IMG/VR virus record: IMGVR_UViG_3300029258_003221
Location: 1 to 64,000 of that record
Reading direction: 5' to 3' (one strand)
DNA length: 64,000 nucleotides
Shown here: piece by piece, positions 4,979 through 29,837 of the stretch
How the letters are laid out: each line of letters opens with the position of its first letter
Numbering within the stretch: position 1 is the first letter of the stretch
Notes under the pieces: model-generated
Databases searched by the model: none
What the model saw: the letters and a program-made list of their open reading frames with translations, nothing else
Told to the model about the DNA's origin: nothing
Position numbers and translations under genes: made by a program

Positions 4979-5329
4979 ATGAAACCCGACACGTAGAACG
5001 TCAAACATTACAGCTATATCTTTGTCAGGGAAGACCTGACAACCTCTCAGCAGGCGGTACAATGCTGTCATGCCGCCATCAACGCCACTGCCAAATACGG
5101 TCTAGGCGATTTGCCAGACCATCCTTATCTTGTCATCTTGGCAGTCAAGAATGAATCCAAGTTGCTCCGGGTACAAAAATACCTGTCAGAGCACGGAATT
5201 CAGTTCTCTTCTTTTCACGAGTCTGATCTCGATAATGAGCTTACGGCTATTGCGACCGAGCCCATTAAAGAGCATCAACGTGCAATCTTCCGCAAGTATC
5301 AGTGCCTTAAACCAAGGGAGGCTGCGTGA
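4979..5329 (+). CDS. Pth2-like peptidyl-tRNA hydrolase with an in-frame TAG at codon 6 (4994-4996)
   Basis: AGGAG-N6-ATG; MKPDT*NVKHYSYIFVREDLTTSQQAVQCCHAAI...FHESDLDNELTAIATEP. The Pth2-type VRxDL/QxxHAA motif lies upstream of the ORF-track start 5111, and no alternative start codon lies between the TAG and the motif. Confidence 0.8.
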
Positions 5330-5676: not shown

Positions 5677-5751
5677 GGGTGCGTAGCTCAATTGGCAGAG
5701 CAGCGAGTTCTAGCCTCGTGTTTGTTGCAGGTTCGATCCCTGTCGCACCTT
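5677..5751 (+). tRNA. tRNA with anticodon CTA (amber suppressor), Trp-like body, no encoded CCA
   Basis: Cloverleaf: GGGTGCG/CGCACCT; GCTC/GAGC; GCGAG-TTCTAGC-CTCGT (CTA at 5710-5712); GCAGG-TTCGATC-CCTGT. Confidence 0.85.
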
Positions 5752-22921: not shown

Positions 22922-23236
22922 ATGAAATTCAAGGACTTCATGGAAAACAGGCAGCTTGGCAGATCATTGCCCGAAACAGGCTACACAAGCCCACATGCCA
23001 TCATTTATCGAGCCTCACTGGAACCCGATCTCTTGGGAAACCGTGAATATGTGACCATGAGCCGTAAATTCGCAGTCGAACACGCAGAACACCAAGCGGC
23101 TGTGGAAGAAGAGCCATGTAGTGTTTACCGCTATCTGGTGAAGTCCTCGAATGTCTATGAGGCATACAATCCCGGAGAGTATTTCTATGCTGGACCACCG
23201 GTTCAGGGAAGGATCATACATGTTGCAGAAGTTTAA
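22922..23236 (+). CDS. ADP-ribosyltransferase-like small protein with a capsid-targeting-like N-terminus
   Basis: MKFKDFMEN; IYRA...VTMSRKFA...GEYFY resembles an R-S-E triad. Confidence 0.45.
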   Translation: MKFKDFMENRQLGRSLPETGYTSPHAIIYRASLEPDLLGNREYVTMSRKFAVEHAEHQAAVEEEPCSVYRYLVKSSNVYEAYNPGEYFYAGPPVQGRIIHVAEV

Positions 23237-23768
23237 GACATTCCAAAGGTTTCTGACGGAGAAGAAGGATGCTGATTACAGCTACTCCTGCGTCATGTTG
23301 ATGTTCCCCTCCGAAGATGCCAAAAATGTCCTAGACTGGTCCAAGCAACACATCCCGGACGACAAAATCTTTGAGGATGATGACAAAGGCCGAGAAGACG
23401 AAATTCATGTTACAGTCCTGTATGGCCTACATACAAATGAATCTGGTCCCGTGGAAGAGATCATGGAGTCTCATGAGGGTTTTGAGATTGAGCTAGGAGA
23501 AATCTCAAAGTTCGAAAGCAAGGATTATGATGTCATCAAAATCGGAATCTCTGGAGAAGCTTTACATAAAGCCAACAAGACGCTCAGAGAGCTTGATTTC
23601 ACATCGAATTACGATGAATACAAGCCACACTGCACGATTGCCTATGTGAAAAAGGGATCGTGTGACGACCTGCTCGGAAACAAAGACTTCACAGGGCAGA
23701 AGGTTCCCGTCAAGGAATTGGTCTTTAGTCCCGCTGAGGGTGATCGGACAAAGATCGCTCTGACTTGA
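23220..23768 (+). CDS. 2H phosphoesterase (T4 57B/Acb1-like fold)
   Basis: EIHVTVLYG and YKPHCTIAY; start refined. Confidence 0.8.
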   Translation: MLQKFKTFQRFLTEKKDADYSYSCVMLMFPSEDAKNVLDWSKQHIPDDKIFEDDDKGREDEIHVTVLYGLHTNESGPVEEIMESHEGFEIELGEISKFESKDYDVIKIGISGEALHKANKTLRELDFTSNYDEYKPHCTIAYVKKGSCDDLLGNKDFTGQKVPVKELVFSPAEGDRTKIALT

Positions 23769-23815: not shown

Positions 23816-24694
23816 ATGATGCAAACCCTATCCAAGTTAATGGTTGAAGAATACGACGCTGATCTAGGCCAAGAATGGAATCAAGATACACTCGATCTGA
23901 AGACCATGGTTACGGCCTTGTCGTTCCAAAGACACATCTACCTGAACCCGGAAGAGAACGTAAAAGCACGGAAAATCATTGAGAATGTGTTTCGATCACA
24001 TTGTGATTTTGTCGAAGTTCAAGGCGATTATGGCAATGTCATCGGTGGCTGGGATGCCGATCTGTCAGGCAAACACGTGATCGGAGGTCATTACGATGGT
24101 CCTCCGGGCAGCCCCGGAGCCGACGACAACGCCTCGGCAATCTCTTCTCTTTGCCTGCTGGCAAAGAAACTTTCGGACATAAAACCGAAAGATGTTGTCC
24201 TTGTGGCCTTCAATGGAGAAGAAGAAGGTCTTCTAGGTAGCTTTGACTTTGTTGAAAAGATGTCACCAAAGTCAGGCGTGATCCTTGAGATGGTTGGGTA
24301 TTTCGTGGAAGACGAAGATTCTCAGCAGATGCCTCAAGGTTTGCCAGAATACTCCGTAGGAGATTTCTTAGGCATTGTAGGCAATCGCTACACAGGTAGT
24401 TTGGGGAAAGAGCTAACAGACATTGCACGATCCATGAAGCTGAACCTTCCCATCAAAAACCTGAAGATACCTCTCGGCCTTGAAGAAAGATTGCCGGGCC
24501 TGAGTAACACCAGACGCAGTGACCACTACCCGTTCTGGAAAAAGAAGCTCCCGGCTGTCATGCTCACTGATACTGCCGAATTCAGAAATGCCAACTACCA
24601 CAGACGAACAGATACGCCCGATACCCTGAATTACAGTGGAATGGCACAGGTCGTCAGAATGCTTGAGCAGTATTGTCAGAAGTTACTCTCTTAG
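23816..24694 (+). CDS. M28 family peptidase
   Basis: GGHYD, PGADDNASA, FNGEEEG, ILEMVG, RRSDHYPF, NYHRRTD. Confidence 0.9.
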   Translation: MMQTLSKLMVEEYDADLGQEWNQDTLDLKTMVTALSFQRHIYLNPEENVKARKIIENVFRSHCDFVEVQGDYGNVIGGWDADLSGKHVIGGHYDGPPGSPGADDNASAISSLCLLAKKLSDIKPKDVVLVAFNGEEEGLLGSFDFVEKMSPKSGVILEMVGYFVEDEDSQQMPQGLPEYSVGDFLGIVGNRYTGSLGKELTDIARSMKLNLPIKNLKIPLGLEERLPGLSNTRRSDHYPFWKKKLPAVMLTDTAEFRNANYHRRTDTPDTLNYSGMAQVVRMLEQYCQKLLS

Positions 24695-24710
24695 GCAAAG
24701 GAGAAACACT

Positions 24711-24998
24711 ATGCCCAAAGCAGCAGCTAGACACATTTTGGTCGCCGATGAAGCGACATGCAGCCTTATCAAACAACAAATCGAAAGCGGAGAAGCCACT
24801 TTCGAAGAACTCGCCAGACAACACTCCAAATGCCCTTCAGGTAAGGCCGCAGGTGGAAGCCTCGGAACGTTTGAACCGGGACGTATGGTTCCTGAATTTG
24901 ATCAAGTTTGCTTCAATAGCATGGTTGGCGAAGTGCACGGTCCTGTGAAAACTCAATTTGGTTACCACTTGATTGAGATTACAAATCGAATCGACTAA
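24711..24998 (+). CDS. ppiC: Parvulin-type peptidyl-prolyl isomerase
   Basis: ARHILV, FEELARQHSKCPSG, GGSLGTF, MVPEFD, GPVKTQFGYHLI. Confidence 0.95.
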   Translation: MPKAAARHILVADEATCSLIKQQIESGEATFEELARQHSKCPSGKAAGGSLGTFEPGRMVPEFDQVCFNSMVGEVHGPVKTQFGYHLIEITNRID

Positions 24999-25700: not shown

Positions 25701-26222
25701 ATGAAGATTTACACAAAAGCAGGAGACAAAGGTAAGACGTTTATGCCGGGAGAAGGTAAAGTAGATAAATACGATTGCTCCGTAGACGCTCAGGGAGAAA
25801 TCGATGAACTCAATGCGTGGCTCGCTCACCTCCTACAGGAACACCCGGAATCCCCCGAAGAACAAATCATAGTAAACGCTCAAAACGTCCTGATGCACAT
25901 CGGAGCACAACTTGCAACCAGAGAACAAAGACTCAGAGAATCAGATATCACTGAGTTGGAAATTTCCATTGATCGTATGGAAGGCGGTTTACCAGAACTG
26001 ACCAACTTCATTCTTCCTTGCTACCCAACAGAAGGACATATTGCCCGAACAGTTTGCCGACGTGCCGAAAGGCAAATGGCCGCTTGGGAAGCAAATGCAG
26101 ATGATAAAGAGAAATTCAATCTCATCCTGCCTTATCTGAACAGACTCAGTGACTTCCTCTTTGTCTGGTGCCGAACTCTCTGTGGTAACCTCGAAGAAGT
26201 TTGGTATGGAAACGATAGATAA
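25701..26222 (+). CDS. pduO: ATP:cob(I)alamin adenosyltransferase, PduO type
   Basis: KIYTKAGDKGKT, GEIDELNA, LTNFILP, ARTVCRRAER, YLNRLSDFLF. Confidence 0.93.
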   Translation: MKIYTKAGDKGKTFMPGEGKVDKYDCSVDAQGEIDELNAWLAHLLQEHPESPEEQIIVNAQNVLMHIGAQLATREQRLRESDITELEISIDRMEGGLPELTNFILPCYPTEGHIARTVCRRAERQMAAWEANADDKEKFNLILPYLNRLSDFLFVWCRTLCGNLEEVWYGNDR

Positions 26223-26985: not shown

Positions 26986-27186
26986 ATGCTGAGCCCTACT
27001 TCTTATCTGTTCAACAAAATCTGTGAATACTCAATGAACCAATTTTCAGAAGGAAATATCACCGAAGAAGAATCTGAACAGATCATGGACAAAGCAGAGC
27101 TTTGTGATCTGGAAGGTATGGTTGACATGTGCGTCGAACATAACATCATTATCCCCAAGGAAATTCAAAAAGGATTGTCATGCTAG
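26986..27186 (+). CDS. Hypothetical protein
   Basis: AGGAGG RBS. Confidence 0.6.
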   Translation: MLSPTSYLFNKICEYSMNQFSEGNITEEESEQIMDKAELCDLEGMVDMCVEHNIIIPKEIQKGLSC

Positions 27187-27500
27187 AAAACCTAAGAGCC
27201 GCAAACAAACAACGACACAAAGAATGGGGCGAAGGAGCAGACCTCACACTCTCTTTCCGAGGACTGGAATTGGGTGGCGAAGCCGGTGAAGTCTGCAACG
27301 AACTGAAAAAACTGGAACGGACCCGATTCGGTATCGCTGGTGGAAAAGAAGATACTCAGGGTCTTCGTGAAGAACTTGCCGATGTCATCATCTGTGTTGA
27401 TTTGATCGCCATGGATATGGGCATCGATCTCGGAGACGCCATCAGAGAAAAGTTCAATATGACCTCCGAAAAATACGGTCTGGAAACAAGGATCGCCTGA
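27180..27500 (+). CDS. MazG-like pyrophosphohydrolase
   Basis: ELGGEAGEVCNELKK...LREELADVII. Confidence 0.85.
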   Translation: MLENLRAANKQRHKEWGEGADLTLSFRGLELGGEAGEVCNELKKLERTRFGIAGGKEDTQGLREELADVIICVDLIAMDMGIDLGDAIREKFNMTSEKYGLETRIA

Positions 27501-27518
27501 TCCAAACTATGATATGAC

Positions 27519-27677
27519 ATGCAAACTCAGACCATAATGCCACCACCAAAACCGCCCGAGGACAACATTGTTGCCTCGGGCTTTCCTGATGACATTCGAG
27601 ATATCGGTGACCGAATCGCCGCACTCTCCTCTGATCAAGCATCAAAGCTGTCCCAATACCTCGACGGAAAACAATGA
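27519..27677 (+). CDS. 52-aa protein resembling only the N-terminal domain of ribosomal bL12 (not in the track)
   Basis: MQTQTIMPPPKPPEDNIVASGFPDDIRDIGDRIAALSSDQASKLSQYLDGKQ; ATGA overlap with 27674. Confidence 0.55.
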   Translation: MQTQTIMPPPKPPEDNIVASGFPDDIRDIGDRIAALSSDQASKLSQYLDGKQ

Positions 27678-28489
27678 AGCACGACAGAGTTATGATCCTT
27701 GGCTCCAATGGATACCTTGGAAAAAAGTTCCATGAAGCCTACCCAGAAGCCATCACCACAAACATCGATATCATGGACCAAAGAGAACTCCTCAGTGCCA
27801 TCGATGTCAATTCACCCAATGTTATCATAAATGCCGCAGGAAAAACCGGTAGACCAAATGTGGATTGGTGTGAGGATCACAAAAAAGAAACTCTTAGATC
27901 AAATGTTACAGCCCCTCTGATGATCTGTGATGAAGCCCTCAAACGAAATATCTACTTCGTCCACATTAGCTCAGGATGCATATATCAAAATGGGGAATTT
28001 GGAGAAGATGATGAGCCTAACTTCAAAGGGAGCTATTACTCTAAGACGAAGGCGTTTGCTGATCAACTTCTGGCTGACTTTCCTGCTTTGGTCCTTCGCC
28101 TGAGAATGCCATTCGATGATTCCCTCGGCGAACGAACTCTTATCGGCAAAATCTTAAAGTACAAGCGTGTAATCGATGTCAAGAACTCCCTGACCTACAC
28201 GCCAGACTTTGTTGAGACTGCTCAAAAGCTCATAGATCGCCGCAAAACAGGCATCTACAATGTCGTGAATACAGGGTCCATCTCCCCATTCGAAATCATG
28301 GAGATGTACAAAGAACACGTCGATCCCAATCATGAGTTCGAAAAACTCCCTCTCGAAGAACTGGGAGACTACTGCAATACAGGTAGAAGCAACTGCCGAC
28401 TGTCAACAAAAAAACTGGCAGAAGAAGGATTGGAACTGCCTCCAATCCACACTCGGCTCAAAGAAGCTATGCAAAAGATCGCATCATAG
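27674..28489 (+). CDS. NDP-4-keto-6-deoxy-sugar epimerase/reductase (RmlD-like, rhamnose synthesis)
   Basis: ILGSNGYLG, NAAGKTGRPNVDWCE, SSGCIY, YYSKTK. Confidence 0.9.
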   Translation: MKHDRVMILGSNGYLGKKFHEAYPEAITTNIDIMDQRELLSAIDVNSPNVIINAAGKTGRPNVDWCEDHKKETLRSNVTAPLMICDEALKRNIYFVHISSGCIYQNGEFGEDDEPNFKGSYYSKTKAFADQLLADFPALVLRLRMPFDDSLGERTLIGKILKYKRVIDVKNSLTYTPDFVETAQKLIDRRKTGIYNVVNTGSISPFEIMEMYKEHVDPNHEFEKLPLEELGDYCNTGRSNCRLSTKKLAEEGLELPPIHTRLKEAMQKIAS

Positions 28490-28765
28490 CTCGATCTCTT
28501 CGTCGTCCCAGATGATAGCTTTCTGATCAAACCGCTTGCCGAGTTCCGTGAGGTCTTCTAAAGAGATGTCGCTGATCTCAAACGCATCTTCCTCGTGCCC
28601 ATTGTAGCTGCCTCGAACCGGAACAGGATCGTATCCACGATCTCTCAGAAACTGAAGAAGCTCTCTATTGGCGTCTTCGTTCTCCTTGTCCGGGAGCTTG
28701 TTACCCATTGGGTTGTGTGCAGTGATAACACCACGCTTTCTGACGAACTCTCGAAATGTGCCCAT
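28484..28765 (-). CDS. DUF3293-like protein with a capsid-targeting-like N-terminus
   Basis: MGTFREFV; ITAHNP...EN..AN..L...G.Y..EE. Confidence 0.6.
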   Translation of the reverse strand: MGTFREFVRKRGVITAHNPMGNKLPDKENEDANRELLQFLRDRGYDPVPVRGSYNGHEEDAFEISDISLEDLTELGKRFDQKAIIWDDEEIEL

Positions 28766-28781
28766 GCTGTATATATGAGAC

Positions 28782-29837
28782 TTACTTGATATACCTGTAA
28801 TCCTCGCCAGCCTTCAAGCTTTTTACAGTATTATACATCAATTTAATTGTGCTCTTCACATCCTTCTTGTGAACCATTTCAACAGATGTATGCATGTACT
28901 TCAATGGCAAACTAATCAAACAGGAAGGAATTCCACCAGCAGCTTTGTAAAAAGCTCCTGTGTCCGTTCCACTGTTGCCATTGTATGTGCCGATCTGAAC
29001 TTTGACCTTACTCTTCTTGGCAACCTTCAAAACCTTCTTCAAAAGATTTCTCTGAACATCAGGACCATAATACAAAGCAGGCCCATTCCCGCATGACACA
29101 TCACCACACAATCGTGTATTATACATCGGTGAATGTGAATCATGTGTTACGTCTGTAATGATGGCCACATCCGGCTTGATACTGTGAGCAATCATGTGAG
29201 CGCCACACAAGCCTATCTCTTCCTGAACTGCATTTACTACATGCAAACCAAATGGAAGCTCGTCTTTCTTTTCCTTCAACATTCGAGCAACCTGAGCAAT
29301 CATATAACCGCCCATTCGATTGTCTAAAGCACGACACAAATAGTAATCACCCATGACCTCAAACGGAGCATCATAAGTCATCACACAACCAACATGAATT
29401 CCCATCTCCTCAACTTGCTTTTTGTTCTCAGCTCCAACATCAACATAAAGATTCTTAACCTTTGGTGTTTCTGAGTCACGCTCGTGAATAGCAAGCCAGC
29501 CAAATACGCCACGAACAGTTCCCTTTTGGCCAATTATGTTCACCCGTTGACCCGGAGCAACCATCTCATCTGATCCACCTCGGCGAACAACACTGATATA
29601 ACCCTTTTCATCAATGTGCGAGACTGTCCAACCAATTTCATCGGCATGAGCTTCAATCACCACTTTGTATTTGGCATCAGGGTTTACTACGGCAACTGCT
29701 GTCCCATAAGAATCACAGTATGTTTCATCAACATACTGTGAGATGTAGTCCAGCCAGATCTTCTGACCTTCGGTTTCCCAACCAGTGGGCGACTGAGCAT
29801 TCAAATAACTTTGTAGAAACTTCTCTCGCTTATTCAT
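28782..29837 (-). CDS. M42 family aminopeptidase
   Basis: EAHADEIG, ALDNRMG, VQEEIG, IITDVTH, LKYMHT. Confidence 0.93.
   Translation of the reverse strand: MNKREKFLQSYLNAQSPTGWETEGQKIWLDYISQYVDETYCDSYGTAVAVVNPDAKYKVVIEAHADEIGWTVSHIDEKGYISVVRRGGSDEMVAPGQRVNIIGQKGTVRGVFGWLAIHERDSETPKVKNLYVDVGAENKKQVEEMGIHVGCVMTYDAPFEVMGDYYLCRALDNRMGGYMIAQVARMLKEKKDELPFGLHVVNAVQEEIGLCGAHMIAHSIKPDVAIITDVTHDSHSPMYNTRLCGDVSCGNGPALYYGPDVQRNLLKKVLKVAKKSKVKVQIGTYNGNSGTDTGAFYKAAGGIPSCLISLPLKYMHTSVEMVHKKDVKSTIKLMYNTVKSLKAGEDYRYIK

Follow-up and report, generated by a model that had tools for sequence, protein, structure and literature searches.

An anchor-only homologue of ribosomal stalk protein bL12 in a large phage, probably of Planctomycetota

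Here we asked whether a very short open reading frame (ORF) encodes a real protein, and whether it resembles, as had been suggested from the sequence alone, only the N-terminal domain (NTD) of the ribosomal stalk protein bL12 (L7/L12) and not its C-terminal domain (CTD). The DNA analysed (hereafter the window) is the first 64,000 nucleotides of the 234,631-bp IMG/VR virus record IMGVR_UViG_3300029258_003221, which CheckV estimates to be 44% complete. The features of the locus are as follows.

27180..27500 (+), upstream neighbour, a MazG-like pyrophosphatase gene (Pfam PF12643 and PF03819), in the same frame as the mini-gene and separated from it by two in-frame TGA codons
27519..27677 (+), mini-gene of 52 codons plus TGA (ATG at 27519, TGA at 27675-27677), encoding a CTD-less paralogue of the bL12 NTD
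27519..27590 (+), residues 1-24, a family-specific N-terminal extension (MQTQT...PPPKPP...VASGF) with no predicted secondary structure
27540..27557 (+), PPPKPP motif (residues 8-13), including a PPP triplet
27591..27674 (+), residues 25-52, a predicted bL12-NTD-like helical hairpin (helix 25-34, helix 38-51)
27674..27677 (+), ATGA overlap of the mini-gene stop and the start of the next gene
27674..28489 (+), downstream neighbour, an RmlD/epimerase-like gene (Pfam PF04321, E 5.8e-16), the last gene of a long plus-strand block

The mini-gene is real and conserved

The observation underlying the original prediction, a 52-codon ORF coupled by ATGA to the following gene, was confirmed. An ORF of this length is not significant by itself, as dozens of similar length are present in the window, and a promoter and terminator scan around the gene was at chance level. 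We therefore examined its conservation. An exhaustive HMMER search of 1.84 billion representative proteins revealed 36 proteins at E<=1e-3, of which 33 are 41-84 residues long and align over the whole query. They align as M-x-TQT...PPxxPP...A-x-GFPDD-x-IR-x-LGDRIA-x-L(S/T)...A..L..YL, with P9, P10 and I33 invariant. A profile search of 5.8 billion proteins raised the number of small members to about 55 (median 58 aa), all of which are unnamed or called hypothetical and none of which has a Pfam domain. Two of the longer hits of the first search, P0004 (565 aa) and P0026 (744 aa), are built from repeats of about 58 residues, each starting GFPKDLRTxxDRFAEL, to which residues 19-42 of the mini-protein match (whole-sequence E 1.4e-8, summed over 8 repeats); these are probably an unrelated repeat family.

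The closest relative, P0002 (41 aa, 74% identical), is a syntenic orthologue that lies upstream of the same epimerase gene in four other metagenome contigs, including those here termed L003 (197-322) and L004 (198-323). Over codons 1-36 the two genes differ by 18 synonymous and 9 non-synonymous changes, giving a dN/dS of about 0.05 with dS saturated, consistent with purifying selection. The orthologue retains the overlap with the epimerase gene, as GTGA, but a deletion of about 33 nt has removed helix 2 of the hairpin, and in that lineage the hairpin is either dispensable or decaying. Other family members overlap different neighbours by 4 nt. Gene callers started the window protein at the second ATG (46 aa, P0001), but the family alignment and the synonymous changes in codons 2-5 support the first ATG, at 27519. 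An 84-aa ORF on the opposite strand (27454..27708) was rejected because the homologues and the substitution pattern fit the plus-strand frame. A read-through fusion with the MazG-like gene was also rejected, because two TGA codons separate the two ORFs, the mini-gene itself ends in TGA and its homologues stand alone with other neighbours.

These data bear on the possibility that the gene is a spurious ORF or the decaying remnant of a captured rplL gene. The short length, the lack of a Pfam hit, the truncated orthologue and the absence of any listed RNA run would fit such a view. However, about 55 homologues share the same architecture in many unrelated contexts, all share a derived N-terminal extension, the dN/dS is low and, as described below, the small proteins are not scattered among host bL12 lineages. 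We consider this explanation very unlikely.

Relationship to the N-terminal domain of Planctomycetota bL12

Searches with the window protein alone revealed no match in Pfam (even at E<=10), PHROGs, NCBIfam or PDB sequences, and there was no hit to PF16320 (Ribosomal_L12_N) in the whole virus record. NCBIfam searches with all family members gave nothing meaningful. Feature similarity in the ESM Atlas pointed to acyl-carrier (PP-binding) and PKS docking domains, but the best cosine was 0.72, whereas shuffled proteins reach 0.8 a third of the time, and there was no Pfam PP-binding hit; this lead was rejected.

By contrast, the family as a whole gave a clear answer. Of 33 members, 9 gave sub-threshold hits to PF16320, the best with E 3.3e-5 and 23.9 bits against the gathering threshold of 25 bits, so that no member reaches Pfam's own criterion. 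Because no stretch of the full family alignment was conserved enough, we scanned GTDB species genomes with a motif from a subset alignment. The scan landed on the true rplL genes of Pirellulaceae and other Planctomycetota MAGs, directly downstream of rplJ, with products that begin MSETAFADDIRQLGDKIVTLTLKQAKELSDYLKEVHGIEAAAGG. The family profile hits rplL in 5 of 5 Pirellulaceae MAGs at E 7.6e-12 to 2e-10 per genome and in 62 of 301 Planctomycetota genomes. Comparison by hhalign of the family with an alignment of 14 Planctomycetota bL12 proteins gave a probability of 97.7% and E 2.2e-12, covering bL12 residues 7-44. In the search of 5.8 billion proteins the small family is followed by full-length bL12 proteins: every hit above 120 aa carries the bL12 Pfam domains PF16320 and PF00542, and each one with an organism name is from Planctomycetota (Thermostilla, Phycisphaerales, Gemmataceae, Humisphaera and Tepidisphaeraceae). 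The motif DIRDIGDRIAALSSDQASKLSQYL that prompted the comparison is present in the window protein, and the pattern put forward for planctomycete bL12 was correct, as real Pirellulaceae bL12 reads FADDIRQLGDKIVTLTLKQAKELSDYL; BLASTP of the window protein against one such protein gave 15 of 29 identical residues. The two outcomes set beforehand as refuting the idea, lack of a profile match to the bL12 NTD and lack of conservation, gave a mixed result: the window protein itself has no Pfam match, but its family does match and the ORF is conserved.

To obtain a structural view, we modelled the protein with AlphaFold2 using the family alignment. The model contains helices at residues 25-34 and 38-51, with a pLDDT of about 96, while residues 1-24 have no helix or strand and a pLDDT of 67-69. 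Foldseek searches against PDB and AFDB-SwissProt gave no significant hits (E 2.8-9.8), although mitochondrial bL12 (bL12m) and chloroplast bL12c were among the few rows returned, and the family profile searched against PDB sequences gave only designed helical repeats and bL12m at E about 1. A Foldseek-independent alignment against 48,161 PDB chains ranked bL12m first (6gaw_CL; Z 3.5, rmsd 1.6 Å over 37 residues) and the T. maritima L12 N-terminal fragment second (1dd3_C; Z 3.3, rmsd 0.7 Å over 29 residues, with model residues 24-52 on chain residues 1-29), with the E. coli L7 NTD dimer (1rqt) at rank 24. The Z-scores are low in absolute terms, as expected for a 28-residue hairpin, but the ranking agrees with the sequence evidence.

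We next compared 55 small proteins with 76 bL12 sequences column by column. The positions conserved in the Planctomycetota bL12 NTD (I, L, G, D, R/K, I, L, A, L, Y, L) are 80-100% conserved in the small family, which shares the lineage-specific signature (D/E)IRxLGD(K/R)I..L(T/S)...A..L..YL. The HGI motif that ends bL12 helix 2 and leads into the hinge is lost in most members. The window protein stops at the residue aligned with bL12 His38 of this motif, which by hand alignment matches E. coli Phe30. It therefore lacks the flexible Ala/Gly/Pro-rich hinge and the CTD. Family members have a median of 5 residues after the YL motif and none has a CTD motif. The window protein has 4 residues after YL, carries IGD in place of LGD at residues 29-31, and is scored by the family profile at E 1e-26 in its own genome, so that it fits the family as we define it (40-100 aa, PP 18-22 residues upstream of an LGD(R/K)I hairpin and a stop soon after YL). 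No PF00542 (CTD) match and no uL10 match were found in the 234-kb record, and the mini-gene, lying between MazG-like and RmlD-like genes, is not in an rplJL operon. The protein thus does not qualify as a bL12, but it is a clear homologue of the bL12 NTD.

The N-terminal half, which the original prediction did not address, is a conserved proline-rich extension of about 24 residues that is absent from bL12 proteins. A PP dipeptide lies 18-22 residues before the LGD motif in 53 of 57 small members, and 47 of 57 carry a PPxxPP-like motif. Codons 1-24 fall within the stretch (codons 1-36) that gave the low dN/dS. The PPP run of the window protein would be expected to make its synthesis depend on EF-P. 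A PpiC/parvulin-type peptidyl-prolyl isomerase gene (24636..24998, +; E 3e-21) lies 2.5 kb upstream of the mini-gene. On a tree of the hairpin core, based on only 33 columns and hence of limited resolution, the small proteins and the bL12 proteins fall on opposite sides of a single branch (support 96/84), with the small proteins on longer branches. This fits one old capture followed by divergence, rather than repeated recent truncations of host rplL.

Large phages as the probable main carriers

Eight longer contexts were examined, and seven look like large phages, with dense small ORFs and few Pfam hits. Their lengths and notable genes nearby are as follows.

373 kb, endonuclease VII (seen in the 51-kb sister contig L048)
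275 kb, a phage zinc-binding protein
282 kb, PTH2, RmlD-like and NADAR
207 kb, T4 endoV-like and RNA ligase
90 kb, RRF and a phage metallopeptidase
60 kb, a tRNA synthetase domain
90 kb, a further IMG/VR contig

The eighth context, L005, is a true Planctomycetota contig, whose RpoD is 81% identical to that of a species genome. Its family member, P0003 (L005:6001-6168), lies 0.6 kb upstream of dnaG-rpoD in a segment of lower GC (0.52 against 0.58) that is not syntenic with the nearest species genome. A cellular origin of the small family is not supported, as no small paralogue was seen in the 301 Planctomycetota genomes searched and every match there was a real bL12 gene. We infer that the family is chiefly phage-borne and that its carriers infect Planctomycetota, although the host assignment rests only on the bL12 signature.

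Gene neighbours differ between the phages. In the window the mini-gene is the second-to-last gene of its plus-strand block, and the surrounding genes are a mixed set of accessory functions: a 2H-phosphoesterase matching the anti-CBASS protein Acb1 family (23151..23768, +; PF23474, E 1.8e-9; PF13563, E 2.9e-10), a candidate counter-defence gene of the same block; a cobalamin adenosyltransferase (25701..26222, +; E 8.9e-42); a DUF3293 protein (28484..28765, -; E 6.8e-16); and an M42 glutamyl aminopeptidase (28782..29837, -; E 5.6e-71). A thematic link to an amber/Pth locus had also been proposed. A tRNA with a CUA (amber-reading) anticodon, called tRNA-Pyl by ARAGORN (5677..5751, +), is indeed present next to a PTH2-type peptidyl-tRNA hydrolase (5015..5275, +; 29.4 bits, above the cut-off), but they lie 22 kb away, and a crude ORF-length comparison did not show whether TAG is recoded in this phage. 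Other carrier contigs hold translation-related genes within a few kb of the mini-gene (L006:276-752, L051:2657-3040 and L055:9848-10726; ribosome recycling factor, PTH2 and a class-I tRNA synthetase domain). This is suggestive, but large phages often carry such genes, and we treat the link as unsupported.

Inferred action at the ribosomal stalk

The bL12 NTD (E. coli residues 1-32) holds the dimer interface and the region that binds helix α8 of uL10, while the CTD recruits IF2, EF-Tu, EF-G and RF3 (PMC12548414; PMC1635324; PMC6146381). Our data show that the mini-gene encodes a real, conserved protein of a family carried mostly by large phages, that residues 25-52 are homologous to the dimerisation and uL10-anchoring hairpin of Planctomycetota-type bL12, that hinge and CTD are absent, and that residues 1-24 form a family-specific extension under purifying selection; dimerisation, binding to uL10, incorporation into host ribosomes, expression and any effect on translation are inferred. 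For dimerisation and binding to helix α8 of uL10 the only support is conservation of the core positions. The earlier interpretation, a CTD-less stalk competitor or adaptor that could tune translation, is thus partly supported: its homology component holds, whereas competition at the stalk remains inference.

The explanation we favour, at roughly even confidence, is that during infection the protein uses the retained hydrophobic core of the hairpin either to pair with host bL12 NTDs, forming one-headed dimers, or to homodimerise and occupy bL12 sites on helix α8 of host uL10. Either way the ribosome, or the pre-assembly uL10 complex, would end up with fewer CTDs, which should slow or re-weight steps that depend on IF2, EF-G and other translational GTPases. 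The conserved N-terminal peptide probably adds a second contact or recruits a partner. A functional analogue of this outcome is E. coli strain JE105, whose ribosomes carry a single bL12 dimer because a binding site in uL10 was deleted; these ribosomes are slower in the IF2 and EF-G steps, the strain grows worse, and the authors suggest that the number of dimers may tune translation rate (PMC3299993). No natural trans-acting protein with this effect is described there. Several points weigh against this model. It is inferred without experimental or multimer-model evidence of binding, no RNA run was listed to show expression, loss of the HGI end of helix 2 could weaken stalk binding, and the nearest relative lacks helix 2 altogether. 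In addition, a passive plug would not need the conserved N-terminal extension.

Three other readings share part of this evidence. A possible but less likely one is that the hairpin docks on uL10 or bL12 in order to display the PPxxPP peptide at the stalk in place of the CTD, bringing a phage or host factor to the ribosome rather than simply removing CTDs. The conserved sequence and spacing of the extension and its lack of predicted secondary structure, as is typical of short linear motifs, favour this view, but no partner has been identified, no co-conserved partner gene is visible among the differing neighbours and four members lack the PP dipeptide. An unlikely reading is that the protein binds free host bL12 or newly made uL10 before assembly and disturbs stalk assembly or the autoregulation of rplJL, for which the L10(L12)4 complex is the autoregulator (PMC4538822). 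The homology evidence is the same and the complex reassembles readily from free L10 and L12 (PMC1635324), but nothing in the sequence distinguishes this from action on the ribosome, and bL12 is very abundant (about 20-40 µM in E. coli; PMC12548414), so titrating it would need very high expression. Similarly unlikely is that the hairpin is a reused dimerisation module with no ribosomal role, serving a function of the N-terminal peptide, for example as a decoy or an anti-defence factor. The diverged end of helix 2, the relative lacking helix 2, the long, fast-evolving branches and the accessory neighbours, including the Acb1-like phosphoesterase, would fit this, yet the Planctomycetota-specific surface signature LGD(R/K)I...YL is kept at 80-100%, and not only the buried hydrophobic positions, and several carriers hold translation genes near the mini-gene.

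Virus-encoded ribosomal protein homologues are known, mainly bS21 and CTD-type bL12, and are usually read as replacements that keep ribosomes working. The mini-protein belongs among such homologues, as it is encoded in a virus record and its relatives lie in phage-like contigs. The original prediction took full-length bL12 to be known in phages, which is imprecise: the published phage homologues, which occur in varied genomic contexts and are thought to act on host ribosomes, match the CTD family Ribosomal_L12 (PF00542), either in proteins of 98-107 aa or embedded in larger ones, and keep residues that contact uL11, EF-G and EF-Tu (Mizuno et al. 2019, PMC6375957). The present family is the complementary half, the anchor domain only, and the predicted effect is therefore opposite in kind. 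A parallel case is the bL9 fragment of Mycobacterium phage 32HC, which keeps only the N-terminal, ribosome-anchoring domain of a two-domain ribosomal protein, although that anchor binds rRNA rather than a protein and the C-terminal part was replaced rather than deleted (PMC6375957). Our literature searches found no report of an NTD-only bL12 in phages.

The placement of this family shows that proteins invisible to Pfam, PHROGs and NCBIfam can be identified by using lineage-specific profiles. An anchor-only bL12 copy would be a candidate natural dominant-negative or adaptor at the ribosomal stalk. If it binds as predicted, it would provide a simple example of a phage tuning the number of stalk heads per ribosome, a small natural ligand for the bL12-uL10 interface, which is already being pursued as an antibiotic target (PMC6146381; PMC12548414), and a host marker (Planctomycetota) for a set of uncultivated large phages. 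In the boldest form of this view, which we hold only tentatively, large phages of Planctomycetota carry a dedicated, trans-acting "headless" stalk subunit that inserts into the host uL10-bL12 stalk and changes how many factor-recruiting CTDs each ribosome displays, or displays a proline-rich peptide there instead. This would be a natural way for a virus to re-tune host translation at the GTPase-associated centre, and the mirror image of the CTD-type bL12 pieces already known in phages.
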